This document shows, piece by piece, positions 12,245 to 35,810 of a DNA stretch of 35,810 nt (its first letter is position 1; each line of letters starts with the position of its first letter). Source of the stretch: Macrostomum lignano (taxonomy: Eukaryota). The DNA lies in contig NIVC01004758.1 of assembly GCA_002269645.1 (NCBI GenBank), positions 1 to 35,810 of the forward strand, written 5' to 3'. Position numbers and translations under genes: made by a program. The notes below the pieces were generated by a model. The model was given only the letters and a program-made list of their open reading frames with translations. It had not been told where the DNA came from and ran no database searches.

Positions 12245-12316
12245 CACAGCCTTTTTCAATAATGAATGCAGCTGTGCCAGCTTGTCCTGCAGGAGTTCTT
12301 CTTTCTGCTTGGCCAT
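12245..12316 (-). CDS. SGF29: SGF29 exon 1 (coding start): MAKQKEELLQDKLAQLHSLLKKAV
   Basis: ATG at 12316-12314, GTAAGT donor, 84-bp intron. The spliced ORF totals 846 bp, 281 aa. Confidence 0.85.
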
Positions 12317-14820: not shown

Positions 14821-15277
14821 CACAAGTTCCAGAGTCAGACAAGGCATGAAAGGGTTATCAATATTAAGTAATATATACAATTGATCACTTTTGGAGCCAT
14901 AGGCCCTAGGCCTAATAGAAATGCATCGATAGACACTTGTGTTTGCAAGTGCGCAGGCAGTTAAACTTTGATCCTACATGAGCTGATGAGCAGCTGCTAG
15001 CTGCATAGAATACTAGAAACACATTTTCATGCTCATTGATGGGCATAGTTAGGCCTAGGCTTAACCTAACTTTATTAGGTTATTTGTTATTCTTTGAGAT
15101 ATAAAAGAGTTTTTGTTTTATGCAGTTTTGATTTTGCAGTATATAATTTTGGCTCTGCCCAAGGTTGTCATATTCTATATTGTCATATATAGTTTACAAG
15201 GAAAGCAACTAAACTAAATTATCTAAATTGTTATTAATATTAATCTTAGCATTTTATGCTGAATGAATATAAAGAAA

Positions 15278-16002
15278 GGAAGTGCTTATCCCCACAGTCC
15301 CGTGCTGATAATTCCAATTTTATCCACAAATCCATGTCAATAATTTCTAGCTTATCCCCACAGCAGCTTATTTAAAATAATAGCTGTCACCATTCAAGTC
15401 TATATAAGCCATGTCAATAATTACAATTTTAACCACATTTTAACCATAATTTTCAGCTTATCCCATGGCTAAGATTGTTCAATTGTTTGTGTTTAGTTTT
15501 GTGTATTGATGTTAAATTGATATTTTTATTATTATTAAAATATTATTAGGCCCATAATATAGTTGAATTTTGCAAGTCTTATTTCTCTCAATCCTTGAGA
15601 TGTTTGGTTGTTCTAAGTAGGCCTAAAGCCAGCAGCTAAGCAAATATTTAAAATTAACCCTTTTAATGACAAAAAGTTTTAACAAAGTACTTACTTGATA
15701 CTATTTAGTATTCAATATATATAGTTTATTTAGAAGATTTATAAAATAGTGAAAACAAAAATATAGTTTTTGAACATATTCATTTCAAGGTTCTTTATTC
15801 CAATAAGCTGCCATAAGGATAAGCTGGAAATTATTGACATGGATCTATGTGGATAAAATTGGAATTATTAACACGGCTTATAGACTTGAATGGTAGTAGC
15901 TATTTCAATAAGCTACCATGGGGATAAGCTGAAAATTATTGACATAGATCTATGTGGATAAAATTGGAATTATCGGCATGGGACTGTGGGGATAAGCACT
16001 TC
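15278..16002. mobile_element. Non-autonomous foldback / Mutator-like element, 725 bp, with about 200-bp internally repetitive TIRs
   Basis: The left end GAAGTGCTTATCCCCACAGTCCC... mirrors the right end ...GGGACTGTGGGGATAAGCACTTC. A flanking direct repeat TATAAAGAAA lies at 15268-15277 and 16003-16012. Confidence 0.85.
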
Positions 16003-16539
16003 TATAAAGAAATGAATATAATATCTTATACCTTCTTTTTCCTACCTTCCAAATACAATTTCCTAAGTATAAAAAGTGGCAAGTCTCTTCTTTAAAATGT
16101 CTTAAATTGCAATTAATTTTGTTTTATATTTTAAGAGATATATGTACACTTAAGTAGAGAGAAATTGGTCATAGACTTATAAAAGACCAAATAAGGCTAA
16201 ACCAGTTATGTTAAAAAAATCTTCACTGTTGCTTAATTTTGATCATTAGTCATCAAATAGATAGCCTTAGCCTATACATTCAAAGACTAGGAAACAACAT
16301 GCTATGCTATATTTATACTTTGGAGATCTAGGTGCAAAGCAGTTGATATTCTATTTTCCTTGTAATTTCAAACTGCACATAGAGACAATTCTATTAGCAC
16401 AATGGTAGTGAACAAGTTAGTAAACAAGTTCAGTCGTGGAAGAACAAACATGAACTAGAACTAAACTGACCAAAGGTCCATGCCAATGGCAACCTTGTCT
16501 TGGATATATTCTTGACGTGATTGATAAAGACTGTTATCA

Positions 16540-16840
16540 AAGTATCCATAAACTCTATCCTACTACTCCATTAGAAAGATAATGATGAATAGGCAGGTAA
16601 ACAACTTTAAGGATGGAAGAACTGACATGAGTGAACATAATAAGGTTAGGATAAGATCTATGATACTGGCCTAATGGATCATATTCTCAACTTAATCAAT
16701 GAAGACTGCCACCAAAGCATCGACAAAATAGCCAATAGACTAGATTGTTCAGTCTAGATAGTTTACAAGTATTTGCAAAATATTATTCATGTCATGCTAA
16801 ATGCCTATTGGGTTTCCTAATGGCTCATTAAGGATATGAG
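16540..16840 (+). pseudogene. Highly decayed mariner-type transposase N-terminal fragment
   Basis: The broken frames FKDGRTDM and ILNLINEDCHQSIDKIANRLDCSV*IVYKYL...WVS*WL resemble the mariner HTH region ending at the WVPxxL motif; stops and a frameshift are present. Confidence 0.5.
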
Positions 16841-18827
16841 GTAGATTGTCTATATAGAAGGCTTGTGTCTAGGCTCTGTAAGTCTATGACCAATCTTCCT
16901 TTACTCAAGTACATATATCTCTTAAAATATAGATCCAAATTGATGGCACTTTAAGTCATTTAAAAGAAAAGACTTGCTGCTTTCAAACAATACCAAACTT
17001 TTGTAAATGCAACTTACCAAACGTCTGCTACAAGTAAAACTAATACTACTTTCCGAATAATACCCTTATAAATATGTGGTATATGCCTTTTTTGGTCAAA
17101 TTTGTCATATTTAATTGTTTTAGTTTTATAGATTTGGTCAAGTTATAATATGACAATTTTGAATATAATGATTTTGACTGTACTCTATAATTTCTTATTC
17201 TTAATTTGATGATAATTTTAAATATACTTAAGGGATATAGGTCATTTTAGTGACAAGTCATTTTGGTGACAAGTTGCTTCTATGAGATAAGTATGACAGA
17301 CATGCTCTACCTTATGGTAAAAATGAAAGATTCAAAGAGTTGAGCATTTTAGTGATAGTAGACACTTTAAAATATCAGTTTGTAATCATTTTGTTAAAAT
17401 TAAAGTTGTGTATAAGGGCTATTTCAAAAAGTCTATCAAAAAATAAATGCATATATAACTTAAAAAATAATCAAGCTAGGCCTACAATTATATATTGTTT
17501 TTGTGCAGATTGTTTTGAGTTTTTCCTAGAGTATTCAGATACAAACATAGAGGATCCTCCTTGTAAAAAGCCCACCAAGAAAAACAAAAAATTATTCACC
17601 AAATTTGAAAAGCATACAAATATGAAAAATCAAGACTATATCTATGCAGTGTCTAAATAAAATGAAATGAATTAACATTTTACTATTTTAGCAAACCCTG
17701 GAAATTTTAGGTTTCATATCAGTTAAGATTTTTAAGATAATTTTCTGCTTAAAAACCATAATCGCTGTTACCAAAAAGGTCTTTTTCTTGTCATTAGGCC
17801 CTAAAATGACTATAGACCTGCTCAAATACATAGGCATAGACCTAGCAATAGAAATCATGCACCTAGGCCAGTATCCATGCTTTGTAGTGCCTATGCTTTT
17901 GGAGTTTTAGTTGTTAGTCATTTTTTATCTGTTGTTTTGTTATCCAAAGTGTCAACCCCATTAAAAAAAGTAACTTGTGCCATAGGTTGACATTGACAAT
18001 CATTTTGTCTACTGCCAGTTTGTCTACTATTTTTTGTCTATGATAATACAATATTATGGTGGCCAGAATGTGTGACTGGCAAGTGCCAATGCAGATTTAT
18101 TTGAACCCTCCCCAACCTCCATCTAGCTCTAATGGGATAGGTGCACTAAGCTAGTTGGCTCACTAAGCTGGGGGGTTTGCAAAGTCTATTGTGCCACCTT
18201 TTTGTACTTCCTTAGGCTGCTCAATCTTGTGCTATTTGTAAATCTAAATGAATGTACAAATTAGCTCTAAATCTTCATTGCCATTACATCTATTAAATTT
18301 AAACTTAAACTATTAAACTTAATATAGTCATTTTGTCTATCACAAAATATTAAATATAACATTTTTAGTGTTAAGACTCATCATAAGCTTATAATAAGAG
18401 AGGCCTAGTAGTTAGATAATAAACTTACTTTTTTATTATTATAACTATTATAACTAAAAATATTTGCATTCTTTTGTCTTATAATATCCACACCCAATTG
18501 ATTACTTGTGTCAATTTTGTTATACAATAAGAAAATTATACAATAAGAAAATTGCAAAATTGCAAAAAAATGAATTGTAGCTTTCTACAGCACAATCCTT
18601 ATATTCACTTTCGTTATATGATACCCTCAATAGAAAATTTCTTTAATGATTATGAATGTGCAAATTGTAAAACTCATTTTGTACTTTTCACAAGCTTCTA
18701 CTTGAAAATTTTCATTTCAGAAATAAATTCAAGGTTTCAAAGGGTCAGTTTTAAAGAAAGCTTAATTTATCATAGCAGAAAAATCACTCAAGTACCAAAG
18801 CGCTAAGCCTCTGCCAACTAAAAACCC

Positions 18828-21092
18828 ATGCCATTAGCAAGCGCGGCTCTGAAGCACCGCACTCAGTATCATGGCGGCGCCAGTGCCAGGCCTGGCAGCT
18901 CCGGGCGCGCCATTGCTGGCGCATCCAACTTGGCCAGACACGTGCGAGATGAAGGTCTGAAAGAGAACAGGATTGCACCGCTGATGAGCTGCAATGCTGC
19001 AGCTGCTGGCAAGGAGAGGGCCCTGCAAGCTCAGCAGAAGCTGGCGCACGATCAGGTGGCGAGTCTCACTGCCCGAGTGAAGCAGCTTGAGCTGGAGAAC
19101 AGCAGCCTGCGCAGGTGCCTTGCTAATGTTAACAATTGTCGGGCCATGTTTATGGAGGTGCATTCTCAGGCTATCCTGTCGCTTGAGCACCTGTCAAAAT
19201 GTGTGCAGCTCAGCCAGTCTGCTCTGGATGAGCTGGCCCTGGCCGCGCCACCAACCAAGGATGCGGCTGCTGCCGAGTCTCGTCTTCCAGTGGCTACCGT
19301 TGCCGCAACTGTCAGTCAAGATTTGCAGCCCCAATCCACTACTACTACTACTACTCAAAGTAGCAGTGAGAGCGGTGCAGCTGTGCCAAAATCTACTACA
19401 GCTGTGCTGAAGTCCCGTCGAACTGTTGTGATCGAACCGGCGCCTGGCCTTGCCGCATCGGGTGAGTCCAGCAGCGAGTCATTGGTTATCAAACAGCAGC
19501 TGTCAAGGCAGCTGACGCCGCTGATGGAGTGCTCCGAGGCGGCTGGGAGGGCCAGCTTGAATTGCTCAGCGAGAGGATCCTTGCCGAATGATCAGGTCGC
19601 GTTTCTTGAGCAGGATAAACCTCAACAACAACAGCAGGATAAACCTCAACAACAACATCAGGATAAACCTCAACAACAACAACAGGATAAACCTCAACAA
19701 CAACAGGATAAACCTCAACAACAACAGCAGGATAAACCTCAACAACAACAACAGGATAAACCTCAACAACAACAGCAGGATAAACCTCAACAACAACAAC
19801 AGGATAAACCTCAACAACAACAGCAGGATAAACCTCAACAACAACAGCAGGATAAACCTCAACAACAACATCAGGATAAACCTCAACAACAACAGCAGGA
19901 TAAACCTCAACAACAACATCAGGATAAACCTCAACAACAACAGCAGGATAAACCACAACAACAGCAGCTGAATCAGTCCAATCAGAGTCGGCATGAGAAG
20001 TCGCGCCACTCTCTGCCACACGAGTCAATGGAAGTTCAGCAGGAGTTGAACCAGCTGCCAGAGATACCGGCGGAACAGAACAAGCCCGCAGCTGGGTTGC
20101 AACGGAAGGCTTTAAAGTTAAAGCCGCAGCCAAAGCAGCAGCGGAGGCCTCAAAGGCGCAGTCAATTCGTTCGAAACCAGGAGCAGAAATCGCAAGTCCA
20201 CCAGCGGTCAGCCGAAGAGCTTCAAAACCCGACGGAGAACCCTTTCATCCCCCGGCACCGGCTGGCTCGAACTCCGCCTAAGTGCGGCGCCGACACCAGC
20301 GCTGCTGCCAGCGGCAACGGCAACGCCACTTTCGACCAGCTTTCACCGCCGTCTCCGCAGGCGCCGTCAGAGCCTCGGCCAGCGACGCTCTCGCCGACCT
20401 CATCGTTGAAGCTCATCGGCAAGCAGCTGGCGCCATCCATACAGCAGAGGCGCCCGGTCGCCAACCGCGCTGCTGGCAGTCACCAGCGTCGGGGAACCTT
20501 CGTCATCAACCAGCCTCCGCCATCCACAGCGACTCCATCGCCTCCCTCGCCGCCGCCACCTCCGTCGCCGCCAGCCATTGTCCTGGACGTTCGACACGCG
20601 CTTGTCTTGTCGCCGCCACCGCATCCGAGGCTGTCAACCTTGCCTGATCAGCCGGACTTCGCCGAGCTTCCCGATTGGCCGGACACTGCTCGAGCCTCCG
20701 TGTCCACCGCGATGGGTGACGCGGCCGCTTGCTCCTTGACAGCGAAGGTGCTGACTCGCGAGCTGCGCGTTGCTCCCAGGCCCTCCCTGCTGCCGAAGCC
20801 CCTGCTGTCTCCGCCGTCCGCGGCGAAGACCAGCGCGCCGCGCCGCTCGTCTCTGATGGCGCCGCCCGCCGCTGCCGACGAAGCGCCCGCCACCAAGCGG
20901 CATCGCCGGAAGCAGTCTTCAACCGCCACCACCGTCGCCTCGGCGGAATCGTCCGCTGCGTGCGCCGACCTGACCGGCGAGGCTGCCGCCGTCAACTCGT
21001 CAGCGCCTCTGCGGCCTCGCCGTCAACGAGCGGCGGCCGTCAACTACAAGGAGCCCAGCGTTAATACGAAACTGCGACGCTGCGACAAGTGA
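18828..21092 (+). CDS. SGO1: Shugoshin (SGO family), 754 aa, uninterrupted CDS
   Basis: The C-terminal RPRRQRAAAVNYKEPSVNTKLRRCD is the basic SGO motif. An N-terminal coiled coil (LTARVKQLELENSSLRR), a KEN sequence and a long S/P/Q-rich middle are present. SGO1 versus SGO2 cannot be resolved. Confidence 0.9.
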   Translation: MPLASAALKHRTQYHGGASARPGSSGRAIAGASNLARHVRDEGLKENRIAPLMSCNAAAAGKERALQAQQKLAHDQVASLTARVKQLELENSSLRRCLANVNNCRAMFMEVHSQAILSLEHLSKCVQLSQSALDELALAAPPTKDAAAAESRLPVATVAATVSQDLQPQSTTTTTTQSSSESGAAVPKSTTAVLKSRRTVVIEPAPGLAASGESSSESLVIKQQLSRQLTPLMECSEAAGRASLNCSARGSLPNDQVAFLEQDKPQQQQQDKPQQQHQDKPQQQQQDKPQQQQDKPQQQQQDKPQQQQQDKPQQQQQDKPQQQQQDKPQQQQQDKPQQQQQDKPQQQHQDKPQQQQQDKPQQQHQDKPQQQQQDKPQQQQLNQSNQSRHEKSRHSLPHESMEVQQELNQLPEIPAEQNKPAAGLQRKALKLKPQPKQQRRPQRRSQFVRNQEQKSQVHQRSAEELQNPTENPFIPRHRLARTPPKCGADTSAAASGNGNATFDQLSPPSPQAPSEPRPATLSPTSSLKLIGKQLAPSIQQRRPVANRAAGSHQRRGTFVINQPPPSTATPSPPSPPPPPSPPAIVLDVRHALVLSPPPHPRLSTLPDQPDFAELPDWPDTARASVSTAMGDAAACSLTAKVLTRELRVAPRPSLLPKPLLSPPSAAKTSAPRRSSLMAPPAAADEAPATKRHRRKQSSTATTVASAESSAACADLTGEAAAVNSSAPLRPRRQRAAAVNYKEPSVNTKLRRCDK
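19611..19967 (+). repeat. Coding 24-bp minisatellite, 15 units encoding QDKPQQQ(Q/H)
   Basis: CAGGATAAACCTCAACAACAACAG-type units; one unit is 21 bp; the frame is preserved. Confidence 0.97.
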
Positions 21093-21998: not shown

Positions 21999-22625
21999 CC
22001 CTCCCAGCTTCTCAGACAGCCGCCCTCCCAGCTCCTCAAACAGGCACCCTCCCAGCTACTCAAACAGCCGCCCTCCCAGCTCCTCAAACAGCACCCTCCA
22101 AGCTACTCAAACAGCCGCCCTCCCAGCTCCTCAAACAGGCACCCTCCCAGCTCCTCAAACAGCGCCCTCCCAGCTCCTCAAACAGCCGCCCTCCCAGCTC
22201 CTCAAACAGGCACCCTCCCAGCTCCTCAAACAGGCACCCTCCCAGCTCCTCAAACAGGCACCCTCCCAGCTCCTCAAACAGGCACCCTCCCAGCTACTCA
22301 AACAGCCGCCCTCCCAGCTCCTCAAACAGGCACCCTCCCAGCTTCTCAGACAGCCACCCTCCAGCTCCTCAAACAACCGCCCTCCCAGCTCCCCAAACAG
22401 CCGCCCTCCAAACTCCTATATACTCAGACAGCACCCTCGTAGATACTCAGACAGGCACCCTCATAGATGCTCAGACAGGCACCCTCATAGATGTCTCAGA
22501 CAGCCACCCTCATAGATGCTCAGACAGCCACCCTCATAGATGTCTCAGACAGGCACCCTCATAGATGCTCAGACAGCCTCCCTCATAGATGCTCAGACAG
22601 CCTCCTCATAGATGCTCAGACAGAC
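21999..22625. repeat. Two abutting about 24-bp minisatellites (CCTCCCAGCTCCTCAAACAGGCAC, then CAGACAGGCACCCTCATAGATGCT) upstream of MKK4
   Basis: The unit switches at about 22430 and both share CAGGCACCCTC. A donor-like AG|GTAACC at 21995 suggests a 5'UTR intron. Confidence 0.9.
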
Positions 22626-22767
22626 AAAGAAATCCTGCTCAATCCTCACAACTCAACCGCGAACTCCGCCCACTCGCCCATCCTCCAGCCCAGTCCGTCC
22701 CCGAGCCCCCAGCGCGCAGCACCTCCACGCCAGCAACCGCCTCTCCACTGCACTCTGCGGCGCTCCC

Positions 22768-23416
22768 ATGGGCGACAAGAGCAAACTGCAGAAGCCCCGC
22801 TTCGAGCTGCCCATCGCGGCAGCGGCAGCCGCAGCGGCAGCGGCGGCGGCTGCTACGGCAGCAGCGACCGGCAACGACTGCCGCTCGGTGACCACCGGCC
22901 TGCAGCCGCAGCTGTCCTGCCTGTCCTCAATGCCGGCTGTCGGCAAGCTGAAGCTGCCGTCTCCGTCTGACAGCGACGCCTCGGCAACCGCCGACTCCGC
23001 CGCATCGCCGAATGTCGAGCGAGATTTCAGCGTCGACGACCTTGAAGACCTCGGCGAGATCGGCCGGGGCGCATTCGGCACGGTGAACAGCATGCGGTAC
23101 ATCCCCACTGGCATCCCGCTGGCCGTCAAGCGCATCCGGTCCACCGTGGACGAGCGCACGCAGAAGAACATGCTGGCAGAGCTCAGCATTGTTGTCAACT
23201 GCGACTGCGAGTTCATTGCCAAGTCCTACGGGGCCCTGTTCAAGGAGGGCGACTGCTGGATCTGCATGGAGCTGATGGACACCAGCCTGGACAAGCTGTA
23301 CCGGGTGGTGTATCACCATCTCATGACTCACATTCCCGAGCCCGTGATTGCCTCGATTGCCTACTGCACTGTGTCTGCCTTGAACTACCTGAAGAGCATC
23401 TCAAGATGATGCATAG
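22768..23416 (+). CDS. MAP2K4: MKK4/MAP2K4 coding exon 1 (docking-like N-terminus, kinase subdomains I-VIa); apparent 1-bp deletion near 23397
   Basis: DLGEIGRGAFGTV, AVKRIRSTVDE and GALFKEGDCWICMELM; GTAAGT donor at 23417. The start ATG is inferred. Confidence 0.9.
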
Positions 23417-23464
23417 GTAAGTTCAGTGGTTCTTGGTGTTTGGTTTCTCCAATGAGATATTGAA

Positions 23465-23610
23465 ATTCCCAGATATTTGCAATCCCCATGCAGATATTTA
23501 AAATTCCTATTCAGATATTGCAAATCCCCATTCAGATATTGCAAATCCCCATTCAGATATTGCAAATCCCCATTCAGATATTGCAAATCCCCATTCAGAT
23601 ATTAAAAATC
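23465..23610. repeat. 21-bp minisatellite CAGATATTGCAAATCCCCATT in MKK4 intron 1
   Basis: About 7 units. Confidence 0.9.
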
Positions 23611-23699
23611 CCCATTTAGATGTAACCGCAGATACAGATCCAGGTGTAAAGTACATAGAAAGGAATTCGCAATTAGCTGTCTCTTCACCACAACCGCAG

Positions 23700-23973
23700 A
23701 GACGTGAAGCCCAGCAACATCCTGGCCGACCGCTCTGGCCGAGTGAAGCTGTGCGACTTTGGCATCGCTGGAAACCTGGTGGACAGCATCGCCAAGACCC
23801 GGGACGCCGGCTGCCGGCCATACATGGCCCCCGAGCGTATCGACCATCAGCGAATGCAGGACGGCTACGATGTACGCAGCGACATCTGGTCTCTGGGCAT
23901 CTCCCTGTACGAGCTCTGCACCGGCCGCTTCCCCTACAAGCAGTGGAGCACCATGTTTGAGCAGCTCGAGCAG
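23700..23973 (+). CDS. MAP2K4: MKK4 exon 2: (R)DVKPSNIL...DFGIAGNLVDSIAKTRDAGCRPYMAPERID...EQLEQ
   Basis: The activation-loop SIAKT motif is diagnostic of MKK4 (MKK7 has SKAKT); CAG and GTAAGC sites; 274 bp. Confidence 0.96.
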
Positions 23974-23999
23974 GTAAGCACTGGTGTCTTTGAGGGTGT

Positions 24000-24160
24000 A
24001 CAGGTAGCTTTGGTGACTCACAGGTAGCTTTGGTGACTCACAGGTAGCTTTGGTGACTCACAGGTAGCTTTGTTGACTCACAGGTAGCTTTGGTGACTCA
24101 CAGGTAGCTTTGGTGACTCACATGTAGCTTTGGTGACTCACAGGTAGCTTTGGTGAATCA
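24000..24160. repeat. 20-bp minisatellite CAGGTAGCTTTGGTGACTCA in MKK4 intron 2
   Basis: About 8 units. Confidence 0.95.
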
Positions 24161-24183
24161 CAAGCAACTCGGCAACTTTGCAG

Positions 24184-24437
24184 GTGGTAAAAAGCGACCC
24201 GCCGCGCCTGACGGACGAACGGTTCAGCGCCAACGCGCACAACTTTGTAAACTTCTGCCTGACCAAGGATGTGCAGAGGCGGCCCAAGTACCGGGCGCTG
24301 CTGCAGCACAGCTTCCTCACGTCCGGCCCGGATCGGGGGCCTCCGCCAGCTTCTTTGACTTCGTTCTGACCAGCTGCGTGCCGGAGGGCGGCGCTGCCGG
24401 CGGCATCAACGAGCTGGTGTCCGCCCTGCGCATCTGA
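24184..24437 (+). CDS. MAP2K4: MKK4 exon 3 (last): VVKSDPPRL...NFVNFCLTKD..RRPKY.ALLQHSF; apparent 1-bp deletion near 24335-24345
   Basis: Kinase subdomain XI in phase 0. As sequenced, the frame stops at 24369; the shifted frame gives ASFFDFVL... to TGA at 24437, for about 392 aa in total. Confidence 0.85.
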
Positions 24438-24879
24438 GATACGCACCGTTGTACTTTCTCCTTTTTTAGATATAGAACAGCTGACTGTGTTTCTGTTTAA
24501 TCTCTTTCAAAGCATAACCTGAATTTCGCCGGGTTTTTCTGCATGAATTCCCCTGAATTTGCTTTGGCGTTTTTCTTGACCAAGATTTCCCCATAGTGAG
24601 ACGGGGTCTGATCTCGTCAGACCTGTATTTCCGTATGAGATTCTTCAACTTCCAACTTCCTCCATCTTATTCGCCACTTGTTCACCTCTTTTAATAACTG
24701 TTCGCGTTTCACTGCTTTGCAATTTGACCTCTCTAAAGCAATTTTAGAGGTCATATGTTTATAATTTTGTAATTATTTCAATAATTAAGATTTAATCTTG
24801 AGTCCTAATTTTACTGCCCTCTGGTTGGATTTCCGTGTTTTTGTTGCCCGCAGCAGGCAGAGCCCACGACCCACTCCGT

Positions 24880-25291
24880 CAGTCCAGATGTACGCAGAAG
24901 GCAGAGAGCCCCCACCCCCAAACCACCAGTCCAGATGTACGCAGAAGGCAGAGAGCCCCCACCCACTTCTCCAGTCCAGATGTTCGCAGAAGGCAGAGAG
25001 CCCCCACCTCACTCCGCCAGTCCAGATGTTAACCCTAACCCTAACCCTAACCCTAACCCAGTCCAGATGTACGCATAAGGCAAAGAGTCCCCACCCCACT
25101 CCGCCAGTCCAGATGTACGCAGAAGGCAGAGTCCCCACCCCACTCCGCCAGTCCAGATGTACGCAGAAGGCAGAGTCCCCACCCCACTCCACCAGTCCAG
25201 ATGTACGCAGAAGGCAGAGTCCCCACCCCACTCCGCCAGTCCAGATGTACGCAGAAGGCAGAGTCCCCACCCCACTCCGCCAGTCCAGATG
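24880..25291. repeat. About 44-bp minisatellite CCAGTCCAGATGTACGCAGAAGGCAGAG... with an embedded (TAACCC)5 tract at 25030-25059
   Basis: About 9 units, read directly. Confidence 0.93.
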
Positions 25292-25654
25292 TTTTCTTGA
25301 TTGCATGCTCTGCGCAGATCTTTTCGGCTAAATGATGAACCGACTATTTTTGTTTGTTTTCTTGCGCATGTTTCCTGCTGTTATTTGATAGCAGAGATGA
25401 TGAGTTTCTTGTTTAGCTATTTTTTACGTTTCTGGTGCAACACTGCGCAACATTTGCACACAATTTTTACGGTGCATTTTCGCATGCAATTAAGATTAAT
25501 GACACCGCAGTTTCGTGTCTGGAAAATTTAAACTCGTATTTGAATTCGCTGAATATTGCCGCGGCTTGCAAGCTTGGATTTTCGTATGGTTTTTAAAAAT
25601 ATTATTATGGTTAAATTTCTGCCTAAAACTGACACAATCATCCATCGGTCACCC

Positions 25655-26135
25655 AACTCGGACACTCATACACGGGACACCCCACTCGGAGACTCATTTA
25701 CCGGACACCCACTCGGACACCCCACTCAGACACTCATACACTGGCCACCCCACTCGGAGACTCATTTACCGGACACCCCATTTGGACACTCATACACCGG
25801 ACACCCCACTCGGACACCCTCTCGGACACTCATTCACCGGAAACCCCACTCGGACACTCATTCACCGGACACCCCACTCGGACACCCTCACGGACACTCA
25901 TTCACCGGAAACCCCACTCGGACACCCTCTCGGACACTCATTCGCCGGAAACCCCACTCGGACACTCATTCACCGGACACCCCACTCGGACACTTTCTCG
26001 GACACTCATTCACCGGAAACCCCACTCGGACACTCATTCACCGGAAACCCCACTCGGACACTCATTCACCGGACACCCCACTCGGACACCCTCTCGGACA
26101 CTCATTCACCGGAAACCCCACTCGGACACCCATCA
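25655..26135. repeat. Modular minisatellite CCCCACTCGGACACTCATTCACCGGAAA (28 bp) with optional 12-bp modules
   Basis: Explains both repetitive ORFs at 25515-26158. Confidence 0.93.
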
Positions 26136-26679
26136 GACTAATCAATCTTTGTCGTTAAATTTTTGCACAGGTTGCTTTTCTATTTTCACGCCTTACTCTG
26201 GTGCCCCGCTCTGTACACTGCGCTCTCGTCTATGCGCGATCGGCACCGGACAAACTTGTTAAACTCGCAATCGCCCAAGTCCATCGCTCACTCGCTCTTG
26301 CGCACCTTGCATGTTGTCCAAGCAATATTGTCTTAGTCTTTGTAGCGACACCAGAGTCTATTTAATATATCTCTCTGTTTTCTCTTTTGCAATTTTTTGT
26401 TATTTGATTAATTGATTTATTAATTACCTGCCGCGCTGTTGTCTTCAGTTTCCATTCCCTGACTCAAATTTTGCGTGACTTCTTGTGCTACTGTGGGTCT
26501 AATTTCTAGCGTATAAATAATGTTAGTTTAGCTGGATCGCGAAGCAATACTAATACTCGTAGCTTTACTTGTGGACTGATTCGTAAGAAATATGACCATT
26601 ATTTGTGTCTTTTTCATGCGCCTTCCTCAGTGCTAATCCTTTTAAGGATGATAAAACAGTTAGGGATTGTTGGTGCATG

Positions 26680-27230
26680 AAGGATTCTGGGATTCTAGTT
26701 GGGGATTTAAGGATTAGGATTCTAGCTATGGATTCTGAGATTCTAGCTGGGGATTCTGGGAATCTAGTTAGGGATTCTGGGATTCTAGTTGGGGATTCTG
26801 GGATTCTAGTTGGGGACTTAAAGATTGGGATTCTAGCTAGGGATTCTAGGATTCTGGGATTCTAGTTAGGGATTTATGGATTGGGATTCTAGGTAGGGAT
26901 GCTGGGATTGTAGTAGGTGATTCTGGGATTCTAGTTGGGGATTCTGGGATTCTAGTTGGGGATTCTGGGATTCTAGTTGGGGATTCTGGGATTCTAGTTG
27001 GGGATTCTGGGATTCTAGTTGGGGATTCTGGGATTCTAGTTGGGGATTCTGGGATTCTAGTTGGGGATTCTGGGATTCTAGTTGGGGATTCTGGGATTCT
27101 AGTTAAGGATTCTGGGATTCTAGTTGGGGATTCTGGGATTCTAGTTAGGGATTCTATGATTCTAGTTGGGGATTCTGGCATTCTAGTTGGGGATTCTGGG
27201 ATTCTATTTAAGGATTCTGGGATTCTAGCT
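26680..27230. repeat. 21-bp minisatellite GGGATTCTAGTTGGGGATTCT
   Basis: More than 20 units with a homogeneous core. Confidence 0.95.
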
Positions 27231-27361
27231 TGCATTCTACTCGTAAAACCGTTAAATCGATTCGCTATCTTCATAACTTTGCACTTTATGCAAGACAGTT
27301 AATTGCTTCTATTAAAAGAAAGTCAAATCCAAAAGCAGACGCAGCACCAGCAGAAGCAGCA

Positions 27362-27994
27362 ATGCGCAAGAAGCAGTCTTCCACGCGCCGAATGGCCGGC
27401 AGCGACGAAGACGACTTGGAGGCCACCGCGGCCGGCGAGCCTCCCAGCCCGCCGCCGAACGGCAACGGCGGCGCCGATGCGGGAGCAGAAGATTCGCAGG
27501 CAAAAGCAGCAGAAGGTGGAGAAGAAGCCGTACGAGAAGCAGAAGAGGCCGGAGCCAAAGAAGAATCTGCGGCGACGCCCGTCAGCACGAGGACTCGCGG
27601 CAGCAGCGGCGGCGGCGGCGGCACGCACACCTCCCCGGTGTCGGCGCCCGGCATCTACGACACGGTGAAGTGCACCGCCTGCGGCAAGCGGGTGAACCCC
27701 TACAACGGCACCATGCAGCTGCACCCCATGCTCAGCGTGCTGGTCTGTCAGCGCTGCTACAAGTTTTATCGCACCGGCCAGTTTGACATCGACCACGACG
27801 GCAAGGAGAACCAGTGCCGCTGGTGCGGCGAGGGCGGCTCCCTGATCTGCTGCGACCGCTGCCAGCACTCCTTCTGCAAGTCCTGCATCCGCAGGAACCT
27901 CGGCCGCTCGGCGCTGCAAAGCGTTGAGGAGCTGCCCGACGATGCCGTCTGGAGCTGCTACATGTGCGACTCTGCGCCGCTGCTGGAACTGCAG
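27362..27994 (+). CDS. ATRX-type ADD-domain protein, coding exon 1 (GATA-like finger plus PHD-like finger)
   Basis: VKCTACG..VN...HPMLSVLVCQRC..FY....F..D.DG.E.QCRWCGEGG.LICCD.C...FCK.CI.RNLGR...W.CY.C is ATRX-class rather than DNMT3-class. GTGAGC donor at 27995; the start ATG is inferred. Confidence 0.92.
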
Positions 27995-28064
27995 GTGAGC
28001 TCGGCATTTCTTATCCTCGGCTCGGGTCAGCACTCTCTGCTTCAGCAACTAGCTCTCAGATCCT

Positions 28065-28815
28065 CATTTGCTGGGCCAGCCTCCCAGATTTTCAGTTGAT
28101 GTGCCAGCTTCCCAAAGTGTCAGTTGCTGGGCCAGCCTCCAGAGTGTCAGTTGCTGGGCCAGCCTCCCAGAGTGTCAGTTGCTGGGCCAGCCTCCAGAGT
28201 GTCAGTTGCCGGGCCAGCCTCCCAGAGTGTCAGTTGCTGTGCCAGCTTCCCAAAGTGTCAGTTGCTGGGCCAGCCTCCCAGAGTGTCAGTTGCTGGGCCA
28301 GCCTCCCAGATCCTCAGTTGCTGGGCCAGCCTCCCAGAGTGTCAGTTGCTGGGCCAGCCTCTCAGAGTGTCAGTTGCTGGGCCAGCCTCCCAGAGTGTCA
28401 GTTGCTGGGCCAGCCTCCCAGAGTGTCAGTTGCTGGGCCAGCCTCCCAGAGTGTCAGTTGCTGGGCCAGCCTCCCAGATCCTCAGTTGCTGGGCCAGCCT
28501 CCCAGAGTGTCAGTTGGGGGGGGGCAGTCTCCCAAAGTGTCAGTTAGGGGGGGCAGTCTCCCAAAGTGTCAGTTTGGGGGGGGGGGTCTCCCAAAGTGTC
28601 AGTTGGGGGGGGCAGTCTCCCAAAGTGTCAGTCGCTGGGCCAGCCTCCCAGAGTGTCAGTTGCTGGGCCAGGCTCCCAGAGTGTCAGTTGGGGGGGGGGG
28701 CCAGCCTCCCAAAGTGTCAGTTGCTGGGCCAGCCTCCCAGAGTGTCAGTTGGGGGGGGGGGCAGCCTCCCAAAGTGTCAGTTGCTGGGCCAGCCTCTCAA
28801 GTCCCCAGTTGCTGG
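28065..28815. repeat. 28-bp minisatellite GTGTCAGTTGCTGGGCCAGCCTCCCAGA with poly-G variants, in intron 1 of the ADD gene
   Basis: About 26 units. Confidence 0.95.
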
Positions 28816-28879
28816 GCCGTCGCCCCTCTCTCCAGTCATTCCCCAACAGCCAACTCAACTCTCCCTGCCCCACCCGCAG

Positions 28880-29541
28880 ACGGAGGCCCGGGTTGTCATG
28901 CAGGCGGTGCGTGATAAGTACAGCACCGAGGCGGCACGCAGCCGCAAGCAGCAACAGCACCAGCAGCTGAAACTGCAGCAGCAAAAGCAGCAGCAGCAGC
29001 AGAGGCTTCAACAGCGCCAGGGGGCAGCTTCAGCAGTGCCAGCAGGTGGCTTCATGGGCCTGAAGCTGGACATGAGCTCGGTGCCCAGGCTGCCCGGCAC
29101 CACAGCGGCGATGGCAACCACAGCCGGGGTGATATCTGGAGGCCTCAGCAAGCAGCAGCAGCAGCAGCGACAGCGGCAGCAGCTTCTCATGCAGCAGCAG
29201 CAGCGCTTCGCCCAGTCCGTGCCGCGGCTGCCGGCTGCCGCCGGCTCCTCCCAGTTGGCTCTGCAGCGCCAGCAGCAGCAGCAGCTTCAACAGCTGCAGA
29301 AATTGCAACAACAGCAGCAGCAGCAGCTGCAGCAGAGGCAGCGCGCAATGGCGGCAGCTGGCAGCAGTGCGGTGATGACGGAGCAGTGGTACAAGAAGAA
29401 CGTCCGCATCGAGTCCATCCTGGCCGATATCGAGTCCGTGAACACTTATAACATTGGCCCGGCGCTCAATGCCACGGTCACCCTGCTGCAGGGCATGATG
29501 CGCCAGTACAGCCGCCTGCTGCAGGATCTGGCCGCGGTCAG
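28880..29541 (+). CDS. ADD-domain protein exon 2 (polyQ-rich, start of a helical segment)
   Basis: CAG acceptor in phase 0, GC3-rich codons, AG|GTCAGT donor in phase 2 matching exon 3. Confidence 0.85.
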
Positions 29542-29599
29542 GTCAGTTCGCTGGCTGGGGGTATTTTGGGGGAATTCTTTTGCTTGGGGGATTTTAGTG

Positions 29600-29775
29600 A
29601 GATTTCCATGACGGTGGATTCTCTTTGATGAATTTCCATAGGAAGGTGGATTTTCCTTGCAGGGAATTTCCATAGGAGTGTTGATTCTCCTTGTGGGGAA
29701 TTTCCATAGGAGGGTGGATTCTCCTTGTGGGGAATTTCCATATGAGTGTTGATTCTCCTTGCAGGGAATTTCCAT
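29600..29775. repeat. About 34-bp minisatellite GGGAATTTCCATAGGAGTGTTGATTCTCCTTG in intron 2 of the ADD gene
   Basis: About 5 diverged units. Confidence 0.8.
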
Positions 29776-29900
29776 GCTAGGGCTTGCTCTCCTTTATGAC
29801 TTTTTTCGAACGTTAAAAACTCAAAAGTAACTTCAAATATACAAAATTGACGTTTGATTGACTTAACCTGACCCGCATAACCCCGTCTCCCCGAACACAG

Positions 29901-31172
29901 GACCAACCAGGACCGGGCCCAGGTGGTGTCCCGATTCAAGAGCGCCTACCGGATGCACCTGTTCCTGCGCCTGGGCAAGCTGCGCAGCCTCATTGCCGAG
30001 CAGGACCGCCACTCAGTGCGCAAGGCCGCGCCAGCCGGAGCCGCCGCCGCCACGCCGAAGCCGGCCGGCCTCTCCCTGGCCTCCGTGCTGCCGCAGTCCT
30101 CGGCGTCAACGATGGCTGCCGCGGCGGCGCTGCAGCTGCCTGGCACCGCCAGCAAGACAGTGATGGACGCGCAGAACCAGGCGATCCCCATCGCCGAGCT
30201 GCTGCCCGAGCTGAACCGCAACATCCGGGAGATGATCGAGCGGCAGAACCAGGCCCGCAGGGACTCCGAAGCCGCCGCCGCGGCTGCCGCGTCCGGCGTC
30301 GCCATTGTCAGCGGTGGCGAGTCGGTTGAAGCCGGCGGCGAAGGCGACATTGTTGTGCTGAGCGACAAGGAGGCCTCGTGCTCTGCCGGGGCGGACGGCA
30401 TTGCGGAGCTCCTAACGAAGCGGCGGCAGCGCGAGGCCGAGGCTTCCGCGGGCGCTGCGTCGGTCGCCACGTCGAAGTCGAGGAAGAAGAGCCAGCCGAG
30501 GAAGATCACCCTGCCCGCCACCAATCGGCGAATCGCCCTCGGCGACGGTGACGACGAAGCCGAAACTGGCAGCAACAGCAACGGCATCGGCGAGGACGCC
30601 GACGTCGACTACGGAAACGGCGCCGACGATTCGGCGATGCCACAGGCGGCGGCGATGAACGAAAATGGCGACGATGGGGCTGGCGAAGCGGCGTATGGCA
30701 TGGAGGCCGACGCTGCTCCCGACGATGCTCCCGGCGATGCTGGCGACGCTCCTAACGATGTTTGCGACGCACTTGAAGATGTGGGCGAGGCTCCCGAGGA
30801 TGTCGGTGAGGCTCGCGCCGATGTCGGCGAAGCTCCTGGCGACGCCAACAACGGCACGGAGGCTCCACCAGCGATCGTGGCTCCGACGAGCCGTTCGACA
30901 GCGCCGACGCTGCCGCCGCGGATGTCGCCGCCGCGGTTGCCGCTGTAGCCGCGGCAGATGGCGACCAGTTCGAGCCGCTGTGGGCGACTCTGGGCGAGGA
31001 AGCTGGCCGGGGTGACAACGGGGATGGCGGCGGCTCCGTCAAGCGATGCCGCGCTGAAGATCCCGACGCAGCAGACGCCGATCAGGACGATGATGACGAG
31101 CCGGCGCACAAGCGGTCGCGGCCGCAGTCGCCCGGCAGTCTTGAGACGCCGCCTTCGTCCGTCACAGCTTGA
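29901..31172 (+). CDS. ADD-domain protein exon 3 (last): Ala-rich, SIM-like DIVVLSD, acidic tail; apparent 1-bp deletion near 30856
   Basis: CAG acceptor ends at 29900. As sequenced, the frame stops at 30948; the shifted frame continues the D/E-rich composition to TGA at 31172, for about 855 aa in total. Confidence 0.75.
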
Positions 31173-31289
31173 GACAGTTGCCAGTAGCTTTTTGGCGTCT
31201 CCGACGCGGGACTACTACTTGAAGTAGGATGCGCGCATATCAAATCGCAAATAGTGCTAAGTTTTCTATTAATAATGTTAAGTAAGCTG

Positions 31290-31564
31290 TTGCTAATCTA
31301 GCCAATCAGGTACGAATTAATGGAATGGATTGCTAATCTAGCCAATCAGGTACGAATTAATGGAATGGATTGCTAATCTAGCCAATCAGGTACGAAGTAA
31401 TGGAATGGATTGCTAATCTAGTCAATCAGGTACGAAGGAATAAAATGGATTGCTAATCTAGCCAATCAGGTACGAAGGAATGGAATGGATTGCTAATCTA
31501 GCCTATCAGGTACGAAGGAATATAATGGATTGCTAATCTAGCCCATCAGGTACGAAGGAATATA
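31290..31564. repeat. 40-bp minisatellite (TGGATTGCTAATCTAGCCAATCAGGTACGAAGGAATATAA), left part
   Basis: 7 units at 40-bp spacing, interrupted by the transposon. Confidence 0.95.
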
Positions 31565-33122
31565 CACTGTGTTCCAACTTATTATGCAAATCAGTTTTTT
31601 TTAATAATTTTTTCATGAAGCAGCAAAAGTCAGAATTTTTTAGCAGGAAATGTATTTCGTAACAATAAGACTAACCACCAAAACTGAATGAAATTGAACG
31701 CGTATTTTCAAAATGATAATCAAAAATTGACTTTTCTGCTGTTCCAGATAATTATGCAACTAGGAATAAAACATCGTCAGCATGAAATATTGATTGAAAA
31801 TCGGAGAATTTAGTCTCCCAAGCAGCAACACACAATTAATAGTTAATGCGGGCACCCTTCACTTGCAATATTTTTACCAAGCGACTGTCCATCGATGATG
31901 TCAGCTTCTTTACATGTGATTTAGGTATCTTGGACACTTCAGCTTGCACAGCAGCCCACAGATCATGCTTGGAATGATACTGCTTACCATTGCTGTACAA
32001 GCTACGCTTCAAAATGCTCCAAAGATTTTCAATTGGATTCAAATCCGGAGAATTCGAAGGCCAATCTATCAGCTTGTCGTCCTTGAACCCGAGGTCATTC
32101 AAGAAATTGGTCGTCAGCTTCGCAGCATGGGAGGGAGCATTGTCCTGCATGAAAGTCAGCTTCTTTCGGCGAGCTGCTGGCTGGCATCGCAGCCAGGGAA
32201 CAAAATTCAGCTGCAGCAACTGACGGTAAGCTTCACCCGTGACCTTGACGCCATCAGGAACACGGAATGGGCCAATGATGGTGTCGTTGACAATGCCAGC
32301 CCAGATCATGATGCCTCCACCGCCTTGCTGACGCCTCACGCGCTGCCCTGACACCTCGTCTCCAACCATCCAGCCTCTGGCCCAGCCATCAGGCCCATCC
32401 AAAGTGGCCCTGGTCTCATCTGTAAAAATGACTGAACTGAAGTCAGCCTTCAAATACTTCTGCGCCCAGCTGAGGCGCAGTTGGCGATGGCGAGAGGTCA
32501 GCATCGGCTTGGCAACAGCCTTGCGGCATTGAGTGATGGATGCAAGAGTGCGGCACGGCGTAGTTCTTGGCACATGGCCAAGATCCACTTGCTCAAAGAT
32601 GAACTTGCTGGTGGCCAATGGATGTTTAAGGATTTCTCTTTTGATTTCTTGAAGTTTTCGATTCGAAATGCCTCAAACACTAGTTTTGCGAGTCCGCTGC
32701 CTTGATTTGGTGACATCAGCCAAGAATTTCTTTACTGTACGATGATCTCTGCCAAGCTGCTTGGAGATAGACAAAGTAGTTTGGCCAGTTGCCAAAAGTT
32801 GCCCAATTTGAGATTTTTTCTTATCAGAGAGATCCTGGCGCTTGTCCATGGTTGATACACACAGAAAATTGTGAGAGAAATTCAGCTGCAGAACCACACA
32901 GTGAAATTCTGTGGCTTGCATAATAAGTTGGAACAGTGTAGCAGCTGTGTTGCGCAATGAAAGTTTGTTGGCACGTGCTAGCAAGAAGTTTAGTGATTGG
33001 CAGAGCTGCACAGAGTGTGTACTAGCTTGATGTACACCTGACACAAGCAGCAAGTCGCTGCGATCAATAATTTTAAAAATATTCAATTTATCTCTCTTTG
33101 CTTAATAACTTGGAACACAGTG
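31565..33122 (-). mobile_element. Tc1/mariner DNA transposon, DD37E type, 1558 bp, TA target duplication
   Basis: Ends CACTGTGTTCCAACTTATTATGCAAA / TTTGCTTAATAACTTGGAACACAGTG (24 of 26 matching), TA on both sides, and inner repeats at 31742 and 32916. Confidence 0.96.
31836..32849 (-). pseudogene. Tc1-like transposase, 337 codons, interrupted by one in-frame TGA at 32673-32675
   Basis: HTH start MDKRQDLS..., FTDE, QDNAPSH and SPDLNPIENLW; 37 residues separate the second D and the E. The two ORF-track pieces are in the same frame. Confidence 0.93.
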
Positions 33123-33222
33123 TAATGGATTGCTAATCTAGCCCATCAGGTACGAAGGAATATAATGGATTGCTAATCTAGCCAATCAGGTACGGATGAA
33201 TAGAAAGGATTGCTAATCTAAC
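33123..33222. repeat. 40-bp minisatellite, right part (resumes exactly after the transposon)
   Basis: About 2.5 units; removing the element restores GGAATA-TA-ATGG. Confidence 0.93.
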
Positions 33223-34377
33223 CAAAAATTTGCTGAAATGCATCCTGAAACTTTGTTGGTTCTTTACATTCTGTATCTCGCCACTGTCTTCTGCTTTGCA
33301 AAGGCGGTGTTTTATCCCCCAGCTAGTCCCCCAGTTGTATTCCCCCATTGGCATTCGTCTCATTTCGAAATCTAATTCCCTGCAGCTCCGGCCCCGTGTT
33401 TTATTCGCTTCATTGCTGCTATTAATTTTGTTATTCACGGCTAGAATTTAGCCAGAAAACTCCCCGTGTAGTTGTGCCTACTCATAGTAGACAGCGCGCG
33501 AAAATATCGCCTATTTGTGTTGCAATACGTGTGTGTCTGTGTATTTGGTCTCGCCCAATCCTATTTATACGGTAGTTTGTAATGCACCTGTACATGCGGT
33601 TTTATTTTCTCATCCTTCTATTTTTCTGCGAATTCCCGCCCTCGTCCGATACGTAAAAACTGCTTTGCCTGTTTGCTGCTAATGTTAACAAACCGTTTTT
33701 ATACACAATGATTGTTTTAAACGCGTTTTTTTATTACATCAAACTTCTGCTACTGTAAGTAGGCGCTGGCGGGCGCGCTTCGATTATTCTATAGTCCTAT
33801 AATTTATTAGTAATTAACTATTGTTAAATATTATTCAAACGGTTTTTCTGTTGTTACTTTCTACTATATTGTTGCACGCTACTTATTAACTACTGTAAGT
33901 AGCTTGCAATTCTAATTAAAAAAACAGCTTTGCTAGCTACTGCCTGCACGTGTCCTGCGGTTATCATAATATTTATTAATAATTTGTTTTCTAAATGTGT
34001 TGTGCGCTCCCTGTCGGAAATTGCTTTTTAACTTATTGCCCACTGATTAACTCGAGCGAATACCTGCATTGTTGAGCGAACGCTGAGTGTTAAACCACCT
34101 TCAAATTATATACGTTTAATAATGTGGGATGTTACCTGCGCTCTGGTCTGCACGTGAATTGAATCAACATAAACAAAGCATAAACTTGCTTTGAATGAGC
34201 AGATTTGATTTTAGACCCTTCTGTCTGTTTCGTTTGCAAATAAATAAGCTAATTTAATGCTGAGTTTGCGCAGGCACTCCAAATGTCCAATGGCAATTCA
34301 CCATCTTAACCGCCGCCTTTGTCTTTTGTGTTGCCTTTCTTCATTGTCTCATGGCCTGTCACTGACTGCGATCTTTT

Positions 34378-34610
34378 CCCTCCAACTGGTGTGTCACAGG
34401 CCCTCCAACTGGTGTGTCACTGGCCCTCCAACTGGTGTGTCACTGGCCCTCCAACTGGTGTGTCACTGGCCCTCCAACTGATGTGTCACTGGCCCTCCAA
34501 CTGGTGTGTCACTGGCCCTCCAACTGATGTGTCACAGGCCCTCCAACTGATGTGTCACAGGCCCTCCAACTGGTGTGTCACAGGCCCTCCAACTGGTGTG
34601 TCACAGGCCA
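34378..34610. repeat. 23-bp minisatellite GGCCCTCCAACTG(G/A)TGTGTCAC(T/A)
   Basis: About 10 units. Confidence 0.95.
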
Positions 34611-35810
34611 TTTGTCACTCGCAAATCCAATTCAGTGCAAAGTTGGAAGTCTGGGCAGTCGCGCCATATTCAGCACAAGTGAGTGCAGCGCATATTTGAA
34701 TTTATTAAAGCTATGTATTTTGGTTGCGGCAATGCTTGCGCTAGGCTGACTAATAAGGGACTGCGGCGTTACAACAAAATATGAAGCGAGTAAGCGGTTT
34801 CCTTGCCGCTGCGAGCCGTTCTTGTTGCCAGCCGGATATTGTCGGAGCTTTTCTAGGGGGCAAGCAATGACCGGAGATGCCAAAGGAAGCGCGCAAAGCC
34901 GCTAGTTAGCTGGGGGCTGTGAATAAAAACAAAAAAGTTGGGTGCCGTGTCGAGCAAATTAGAATATTGACTACTGCAATGCTGCAAGCAAATCGAGTGG
35001 CATATTGGTATAGTAGCAATTAATAAAGGGATCTACTTTGTTGAATAGTCTACATATCAGTGCAGATAGAAACGATGGATGCTGGCATTATGACTCGTGT
35101 GAACTCTCGAAGGCAGACAAGACACTGCAGAAAGCAGTTAAAATTAGTTTGAAGCGAGGAGGGCGTCTTCTACACTACATGAAGCGCAGAATGGGATTTC
35201 GCTATCACAAACCATCGGTTAGCCGTCCGCGTCTTTGTGGTTGATCCCCAGCTCTTTGTGTGCGCGCGACCCCCGGCAATTTTGATGGGGGCTGCAAATT
35301 AGCTCTAGATTTGCCCGATGAAGTCTTTGTCGCTTTTGCTTCAAGTGCGAGCTCATCAAAGAGCAGAGGGGCAAATTGCTTGTCCTCCGGCAGGCGGTCA
35401 AACAGCGCTGCGAAAGTCGGAGCAAAAGTGGAAGCCAAAAGTAGTCGGAAAGGATTAATGACAAAGAGTGGTTTGCACAAAGTGGTTGCACAAAGACCCG
35501 CCACAGCCTTCGAGTCGTGGGCTGTCTCCTTATACTCGCCAGCTTAGACTAAAGAGGGCGCGAAATCAAACAGTCGATTCAAATATTTTTTGCTAAACTT
35601 TTGCTACAGTTAATAGCACGAGTCACACTTGCCTGTCTTACTACTGGTTAGTAAACTCCAGTAGGGTGGAGCGAACAGTCTATGCAGATTTTTACACTAT
35701 AAAAAGTTTGCAGAGGAAGCAATGCCAGATTCGAAAGGGAACAACAGACCGACCAACAACTGGTGCGCGAAGGCGAGGGAGCTGGACCGACTCCGAGCAG
35801 CATCGGACTG

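Follow-up and report, generated by a model that had tools for sequence, protein, structure and literature searches.

Does Macrostomum lignano, a free-living flatworm, possess a histone-reading half of ATRX that stands apart from the remodelling motor? ATRX couples a histone-mark reader to such a motor, and in Drosophila both work as separate proteins. The question is raised by contig NIVC01004758.1 of the Mlig_3_7 assembly, the whole of which (35,810 base pairs, bp) constitutes the window analysed here. From position 27362 onward, on the forward strand, an ATRX-type ADD domain is encoded within a gene recorded in GenBank as BOX15_Mlig031735g2 (PAA46655.1, "hypothetical protein, partial") and called Mlig031735 below. 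The protein has been present in databases as an uncharacterised entry and is newly recognised here as a stand-alone ATRX reader half. Mlig031735 is a real gene, encoding the histone-reading front half of ATRX without the motor domain. It is considered probable that this expressed gene represents a stand-alone N-terminal half of ATRX, lacking the SNF2 ATPase and derived from the front of an ancestral flatworm ATRX. The protein would be built, in order, of an MRKKQ motif, the ADD domain, a Gln-rich linker, a helical hairpin, a motif resembling a SUMO-interaction motif (SIM) and an acidic tail carrying a basic patch similar to a nuclear localisation signal.

Gene structure and the ADD domain

The gene has three exons bounded by GT-AG introns, in agreement with PAA46655.1. 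Exon 1 (27362-27994, residues 1-211, with a GT donor at 27995) carries the start codon, an MRKKQxxxRR motif, an acidic and Gly-rich N-terminus and most of the ADD domain. Exon 2 (28880-29541) encodes the C-terminal helix of the ADD domain, the Gln-rich linker and the first part of the hairpin, and exon 3 (29901 onward) encodes the second part of the hairpin, an IVVLSD motif and the acidic tail. Intron 1 (27995-28879, GT...AG) is nearly filled by a tandem array of 26.5 copies of a 28-bp unit (28064-28818), while the phase 2 intron 2 (29542-29900, also GT...AG) holds a 34-bp repeat and is absent from the paralogue described below. All of these features lie on the forward strand. The annotated transcript begins with a 5' leader (27323-27361, the GenBank model starting at 27323), and the AG directly before it, at 27321-27322, is a possible acceptor for spliced-leader trans-splicing. 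Since the M. lignano annotation was derived from a genome-guided RNA-seq transcriptome (PMC5730564), the gene model is transcript-based, which argues for expression. Searches of the literature on Macrostomum ATRX, planarian XNP and Mlig031735, covering full texts and the supplements of M. lignano papers, yielded nothing specific. A human homologue named "ATRX" appears among the DNA-modification genes in a list of enriched Gene Ontology terms, where the transcript is not identified (Grudniewska 2016, supplement).

A complete ATRX-class ADD domain had been predicted for this gene, and the prediction is borne out at residues ~95-232 by Pfam, by human ATRX structures and by the presence of 12 out of 12 zinc-binding cysteines. 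The GATA-like zinc finger and the PHD finger occupy residues 95-211 (27644-27994), a stretch supported by the Pfam match, the matches to human structures and the zinc ligands. The C-terminal helix follows at residues 212-232 (28880-28942), a stretch that is spanned by the alignment with the human ATRX ADD domain. The Pfam family PF17981 (ADD_ATRX) is matched at an E value of 2.4e-12, with 46.9 bits against a cut-off of 25.7, and the human ATRX ADD structures 2jm1, 2lbm and 3ql9 are matched at E values of 2.9e-36 to 2.7e-35, the 2jm1 alignment spanning query positions 1-123 with the helix included. Matches to the ADD domains of DNMT3A/B are found at ~1e-5, with 7.5e-6 for the best DNMT3, and are far weaker than those to ATRX.

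The residues of the domain have been compared in an alignment of 157 ADD proteins. Equivalents are present for all four cysteines of the human GATA-like C4 finger (C171, C174, C197, C200) and for all eight ligands of the PHD-type finger (C220, C223, C232, C235, C240, C243, C265, C268). For the residues whose roles in the recognition of unmethylated H3K4 (H3K4me0) and trimethylated H3K9 (H3K9me3) have been described in human ATRX (PMC12900699), Mlig031735 is identical to the human protein at H189, Y204, D212, D214 and Q219. The equivalent of R246 is kept, as is that of H189. Three substitutions, Y203 to F, I209 to F and A224 to G, correspond to the majority states among the 157 proteins. D217 is replaced by E, D207 by G and D208 by Q, with Gly being the majority state at position 207.

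Collinearity with flatworm ATRX and absence of SNF2

The polyQ stretch and the helical segment that had been noted after the ADD domain are both present. The former is a low-complexity linker of 140 residues (28943-29362, residues 233-372), 35% of which are Gln. The latter, at residues 373-473, has been predicted by AlphaFold2 to form a hairpin, with a mean predicted local distance difference test score (pLDDT) of 80.6 from a 10-sequence alignment. Its first part (29363-29541, residues 373-432) shows phmmer and hidden Markov model (HMM) matches to flatworm ATRX, and its second part (29901-30024, residues 432-473) contains invariant F, H and R positions (SRFKSAYRMHLFLRLG). In full-length trematode ATRX models bearing both ADD and SNF2, phmmer and blastp place the hairpin at the matching relative position. 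These models come from Paragonimus, Opisthorchis/Clonorchis, Calicophoron and Heterobilharzia and comprise 2,100-2,200 or 1,472-1,609 amino acids (aa). The hairpin is also matched in proteins of Echinococcus, Fasciola and Schistocephalus, and the MRKKQ motif is common to Mlig031735, its paralogue, S. solidus, Fasciola and full-length trematode ATRX. Collinearity with flatworm ATRX therefore extends over its first ~480 residues, and only the tail of Mlig031735 beyond that point is lineage-specific. The C-terminus had been described as unlike that of vertebrate ATRX or of the Drosophila proteins. This holds for the low-complexity acidic tail only and fails for the hairpin, which is conserved in full-length flatworm ATRX.

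Within the Ala-rich stretch that follows the hairpin lies the IVVLSD motif (30349-30366, context IVVLSDKE), a hydrophobic-acidic element that, by its resemblance to SUMO-interaction or HP1 PxVxL motifs, may have a related function. All other flatworm ATRX proteins examined carry (T/S)IDLT(D/N/H/S) at this place, and the paralogue Mlig023686 keeps VIDLT plus MVVVLSDDDDDEE. IVVLSD is the degenerate counterpart of the conserved flatworm TIDLT motif. We take the (T/S)IDLT(D/N/H/S) form to resemble a SUMO-interaction motif of the PIAS type.

Other affinities of the hairpin have been sought with little return. It has no Pfam match, the HMM built from flatworm hairpins has no match outside flatworms, and comparison of the modelled hairpin with PDB folds returned only generic coiled-coil and helical-bundle matches, all with E>1. 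Homology with the conserved block that follows the ADD domain in vertebrates was considered and rejected as unproven (hhalign E 0.31, with only an FKS motif aligned). Homology with the mosquito dADD1-like protein was likewise rejected as unproven, given that the HMM has no non-flatworm match.

The motor domain, in turn, is absent from the gene and from its surroundings. Neither SNF2_N (PF00176) nor Helicase_C (PF00271) is matched by Pfam in the Mlig031735 protein, and the open reading frame contains ADD only and ends with a stop of its own (position 31172 for the intact copy, 30948 for the window) within a transcript-based model. The post-hairpin, SNF2-containing parts of five flatworm ATRX proteins were used as tblastn queries with a threshold of E<=1. 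No SNF2 match was obtained in the window, in a near-identical sister contig or at the two paralogue loci, and the positive control, an Echinococcus locus, was matched strongly, exon by exon. The statement of the original prediction that no helicase occurs in the exons or in the remaining 4.6 kb is thus upheld. SNF2 exons lying downstream beyond the window, which would have joined the gene to a motor, were sought over the further 5.4 kb that the sister contig provides past the window end, reaching up to 10 kb downstream of the gene, and none was found at the same threshold.

These results bear on the view that Mlig031735 is a short isoform, or simply the 5' portion, of one long ATRX gene. The exons for SNF2 would then be located on a contig not joined to this one or at a distance of more than 10 kb downstream, and the 31172 stop would be used only in an intron-retaining or alternatively polyadenylated isoform, as in ATRXt or Echinococcus. 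Vertebrates also make ATRXt, a short isoform that contains ADD only. The window ends only 4.6 kb past the ADD gene, and in Echinococcus multilocularis an ADD and an SNF2 model are found 760 bp apart and can be joined in frame, both of which favour a long gene. Nevertheless, the sister contig beyond the window shows Tc1/mariner sequence, repeats and an opposite-strand gene, with no SNF2 match, an ankyrin-repeat gene comes after the paralogue on a contig of 157 kb, and both paralogues encode the long acidic tail, to which nothing in the fused flatworm proteins corresponds. A long gene is accordingly regarded as quite improbable.

The automatic naming of related entries is misleading in this respect. 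M. lignano relatives carry the UniRef name "DNA helicase" with no helicase domain behind it, and several M. lignano UniRef entries (P0003, P0004, P0011, P0010) are ADD-only or hairpin-only fragments named "DNA helicase" or "KxDL domain-containing protein". The KxDL label on A0A1I8GUT7, a fragment of 151 aa, was rejected, as no Pfam family is matched at E<=10, PF10241 included.

Copies, paralogues and the origin of the arrangement

The 3' end of the gene differs between two genomic copies. In the window, the reading frame ends at a TAG (30946-30948) after 780 aa, which is identical to the end of the GenBank coding sequence. The sister contig NIVC01001922.1 is 99.56% identical to window positions 23470-35810. 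Within 27300-31300 the two differ at 12 places, 11 of which are intronic (nine in intron 1 and two in intron 2). The sole exonic difference is found at 30865-30866, where CC in the window corresponds to CCC in the sister contig. Because of CCC, the sister copy reads through the tail to a TGA at 31170-31172, giving 855 aa from the Met. The stop at 31172 that had been assigned to the window belongs therefore to the frame of the sister copy only. In this intact reading, which corresponds to the +1-shifted frame of the window after 30865, the Ala/Asp/Gly-rich tail (30706-31169) has the acidic character that had been predicted, with a net charge of -32 over the last 155 residues. A basic HKRSRP patch within it (31107-31124) is a possible nuclear localisation signal. 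Beyond the stop, AATAAA sequences are present at 31439 and 31765. Compared by BLASTP, the frame-shifted tail and the tail of the paralogue are not significantly similar (E 0.63).

The CC in the window is either a homopolymer assembly error or a real allele. Names such as g1 and g2 that share a prefix denote transcripts at least 95% identical, from duplicated parts of the assembly (PMC5730564). The window copy alone could be a decaying duplicate whose frameshift is a genuine allele, in which case the sister copy (g1) would be the only functional one. The 1-bp deletion relative to the sister removes ~100 residues, with the basic KRSR patch among them, and constraint is relaxed in the DV1 line by its extra duplicated chromosomes (PMC5730564). 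The pattern of the difference is, on the other hand, typical of assembly error, and the remaining coding bases are identical in both copies. Decay of the window copy is on balance held to be rather unlikely. The gene is represented by two near-identical genomic copies, and the one on the window contig has a frame-breaking difference of 1 bp near the 3' end.

A more divergent paralogue, Mlig023686 (P0002), is found on two other contigs, one of them of 157 kb. It is 44% identical to Mlig031735 overall, 69% in the ADD domain and 76% in the hairpin, these two being the only parts that are well conserved between the paralogues, and it has the same architecture of ADD, hairpin and acidic tail. The DGTPVV(Q/E)P motif before the ADD domain has been lost in Mlig031735 and retained in the paralogue. 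Mlig023686 is followed 5.2 kb downstream by the ankyrin-repeat gene, not by SNF2. Upstream, a protein kinase gene (window 22612-24318, forward strand) has a counterpart at one paralogue locus (677-2493, Pkinase), and these kinase neighbours are 85-92% identical at the protein level, from which it follows that the two ADD loci are paralogous segments. Since the paralogue has a matching build, the ADD-only architecture predates the duplication and was kept through it. At 85-92% identity versus 44%, the kinase is much less diverged than the ADD gene.

An alternative is that the two ADD-only genes are extra paralogues and not products of a fission. An intact ATRX with both ADD and SNF2 would then have been kept elsewhere in M. 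lignano, with Mlig031735 and Mlig023686 being truncated duplicates of its 5' half that arose by duplication and degeneration and act as competitors or adaptors. This possibility is favoured by the redundancy of the genome, 180 Mb of which lie in duplicated blocks (PMC5730564), and by the duplication of the ADD-only gene itself. ATRXt provides a precedent for an ADD-only product. An exhaustive search with the ADD domain covered 1.84 billion representatives, and the source of about 20 of the 150 matches listed was looked up. The top matches from M. lignano comprise only the two ADD-only families, with no further M. lignano ADD protein among the 20 others so looked up, and the SNF2-bearing top matches that were named come from trematodes, fish, lungfish and a mollusc, none from M. 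lignano. These results stand against a retained full-length gene, as does the XNP of the planarian Dugesia japonica (Q868M6), a protein of 1,076 aa that starts at a Met of its own and lacks ADD, which shows that ADD-less ATPases occur in free-living flatworms. A retained full-length ATRX of great length would, for its part, be invisible to the search with an SNF2 core, which returned nothing above ~1300 aa. Taken together, the notion of extra paralogues appears unlikely, if somewhat less so than that of a long gene.

With regard to the origin of the arrangement, a phylogeny of ADD domains had been suggested as a check and has been constructed. In a neighbour-joining tree, the M. lignano paralogues are sisters (100%) and group with a protein from an ENA contig (72%), beside Neodermata, and the mosquito dADD1-like protein lies on a separate branch. 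By this tree and by motifs that only flatworms share, the gene is placed with flatworm ATRX and not with the insect dADD1-like protein. Fused ADD and SNF2 models exist in trematodes and in the mollusc Babylonia, and the published fission of ADD and SNF2 has been placed within Insecta (PMC4249797). The tree, the absence of the hairpin from the mosquito protein, the fused mollusc and trematode models and the placement of the known fission within Insecta together make it likely that the Macrostomum arrangement arose separately from the insect split into dADD1 and XNP. The suggestion of an independent fission or a stand-alone paralogue stands as far as the ADD-only reading frame and a likely origin apart from insects are concerned. 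The word "split" goes further than this, no SNF2 half from M. lignano being among the best 120 of 753 matches in the search with an SNF2 core.

The closest relative found outside M. lignano is encoded on contig ctg120117l of ENA ERZ25070786 (6582-8675), with 53% identity in the ADD domain and 38% in the hairpin. No SNF2 match is present in the 4.2 kb downstream of it. It may represent another free-living flatworm with an arrangement like that of Mlig031735.

Several points weigh against a stand-alone reader half produced by a split. The window copy is frameshifted before its last ~100 residues. Besides the zinc ligands conserved across the 157 ADD proteins, evidence of selection is limited, with the ratio of nonsynonymous to synonymous substitution rates being uninformative because the two near-identical copies have identical coding sequence. 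Asn and Ala stand in place of human E218 and E252, respectively. As E252L weakens H3K9me3 binding in human ATRX (PMC12900699) and the equivalent residue is Ala here, the histone specificity of Mlig031735 may differ. A full-length ATRX elsewhere in the highly duplicated M. lignano genome is possible. A search with a trematode SNF2 core gave no M. lignano protein among the best 120 of 753 matches, a negative that means little because the query's own 2,223-aa parent was not among them; every match listed was of at most 1,313 aa, so that long proteins were missed.

ADD-only models in other flatworms, finally, are unreliable as evidence of a split, because those of Echinococcus can be joined. In E. 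multilocularis (LN902841.1, 11877-12640), a curated ADD-only model of 518 aa is followed on the same strand by a curated SNF2 model of 1502 aa, and an in-frame GT-AG intron, the one used in a fused E. canadensis model of 1935 aa, is available to connect them. This pair is either one gene or includes an ATRXt-like short isoform, and the ADD-only models in Echinococcus and Candidula may be fragments of one gene. Database "splits" of this kind may thus be annotation artefacts or short isoforms. Cestode ADD-only models were also considered as a sign of a flatworm-wide split, a proposal weakened by the joinable intron of Echinococcus. In Schistocephalus, ADD-only (839 aa) and SNF2-only (1,310 aa) proteins that do not overlap are found.

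A true split would require an ADD-less SNF2 gene in the same M. lignano genome, and the following account of the stand-alone reader half is offered in that light. The gene would descend from the front ~480 residues of an ancestral flatworm ATRX, a part that in Macrostomum would have been physically separated from the SNF2 exons and then duplicated into two divergent paralogues. By analogy with the ADD domains of vertebrate ATRX and dADD1, the domain would most likely dock, in heterochromatin and repeats, on H3 tails with unmethylated K4 and trimethylated K9. Partners, for example HP1, SUMOylated heterochromatin proteins or an ATPase of the XNP/ATRX type without ADD, would be recruited or brought back into association by the hairpin together with the SIM-like motif. 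Histone specificity, partners and a separate SNF2 gene are all proposed here by comparison with known systems, and the hairpin might serve as a dimerisation or partner-binding module. In its fullest form, the account would have ATRX divided among unlinked genes in Macrostomum, in an event separate from that of insects, and the reader half duplicated afterwards. The ADD domain, the previously undescribed hairpin and the PIAS-like SIM would be the only parts still conserved, both from one paralogue to the other and with fused flatworm ATRX, and the hairpin would re-associate the halves or dimerise. This is put forward tentatively, as a possibility that falls short of being probable.

If this is correct, the ATRX N-terminus would have been dissected by nature in M. 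lignano, an animal open to RNA interference and transgenesis, and reader and motor could each be depleted alone in stem cells and germline. Were reader and motor to have come apart independently a second time, in a regenerating flatworm rich in repeats and transposons, their coupling would be shown to be evolutionarily flexible. The comparison also defines conserved N-terminal elements of flatworm ATRX for which there is no Pfam model, namely MRKKQ, DGTPVV(Q/E)P, the hairpin of ~100 residues and the TIDLT SIM.

The remainder of the window is rich in repeats. Downstream of the ADD gene, an array of 40-bp repeats is accompanied by a minus-strand Tc1/mariner remnant and further repetitive sequence, and the next gene on the sister contig is also on the minus strand. 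The Tc1/mariner-type transposase (31836-33086, minus strand), 0.7 kb downstream of the gene, is divided into two open reading frames, one of 260 aa with DDE_3 (E 8.6e-12) and a weak HTH_Tnp_Tc3_2, and an upstream one of 137 aa; it has probably decayed. Tandem arrays with units of 17-77 bp are very dense, with 34 Tandem Repeats Finder rows of score at least 200 (for example 5587-6485, 8159-9188, 10947-12020, 26682-27228, 28064-28818 and 31290-31561). They occur in the two introns of the ADD gene as well as on either side of it, and most of the differences from the sister contig fall within them. A shugoshin-like gene (18828-21092, forward strand), with Shugoshin_C in the precomputed annotation, contains a coding tandem repeat of 15 units of 24 bp specifying DKPQQQQQ (19609-19968). 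An AT-rich block of 7 kb (12001-19000) has a GC content of 28-36%, compared to 45-70% elsewhere, and no open reading frame of at least 180 aa.

Comparison with known ATRX and ADD proteins

With flatworm ATRX, Mlig031735 shares the MRKKQ start, an ADD domain of 39-53% identity, a hairpin of 26-37% identity and a SIM-type motif after the hairpin. The hairpin is matched by phmmer at E values of 1e-7 to 1e-8, and by the HMM at ~1e-38 for members that are mostly in its training set. The difference lies in what comes after, since flatworm ATRX continues into, or directly precedes, SNF2_N and Helicase_C, whereas Mlig031735 ends in an acidic tail.

The ADD domain can be aligned from end to end with that of vertebrate ATRX at ~46% identity, and the zinc ligands, the aromatic positions of the K9me3 pocket and R246 are retained. 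Vertebrate ATRX is nevertheless a single protein of ~2,500 aa that includes SNF2, and the residues equivalent to its E218 and E252 differ in Mlig031735. The conserved block after the vertebrate ADD domain (…LKAFKSVLADLKKAH…) has no demonstrated homology to the flatworm hairpin (hhalign E 0.31). DNMT3A, DNMT3B and DNMT3L belong to the same ADD fold class, with a GATA-like and a PHD finger, and are matched more weakly; Mlig031735 has no methyltransferase domain.

The functional model for Mlig031735 is Drosophila dADD1 (CG8290), in which an ATRX-type ADD domain likewise stands at the N-terminus of a separate protein that has long low-complexity regions and lacks SNF2. In the fly, this protein binds to H3K9me3 and acts together with HP1a and XNP (PMC4249797; PMC10671109). 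Its isoforms carry MADF domains (PMC4249797), of which the Mlig031735 protein has none, and the mosquito dADD1-like protein shares only 39% identity with Mlig031735 in the ADD domain and is without the flatworm hairpin.

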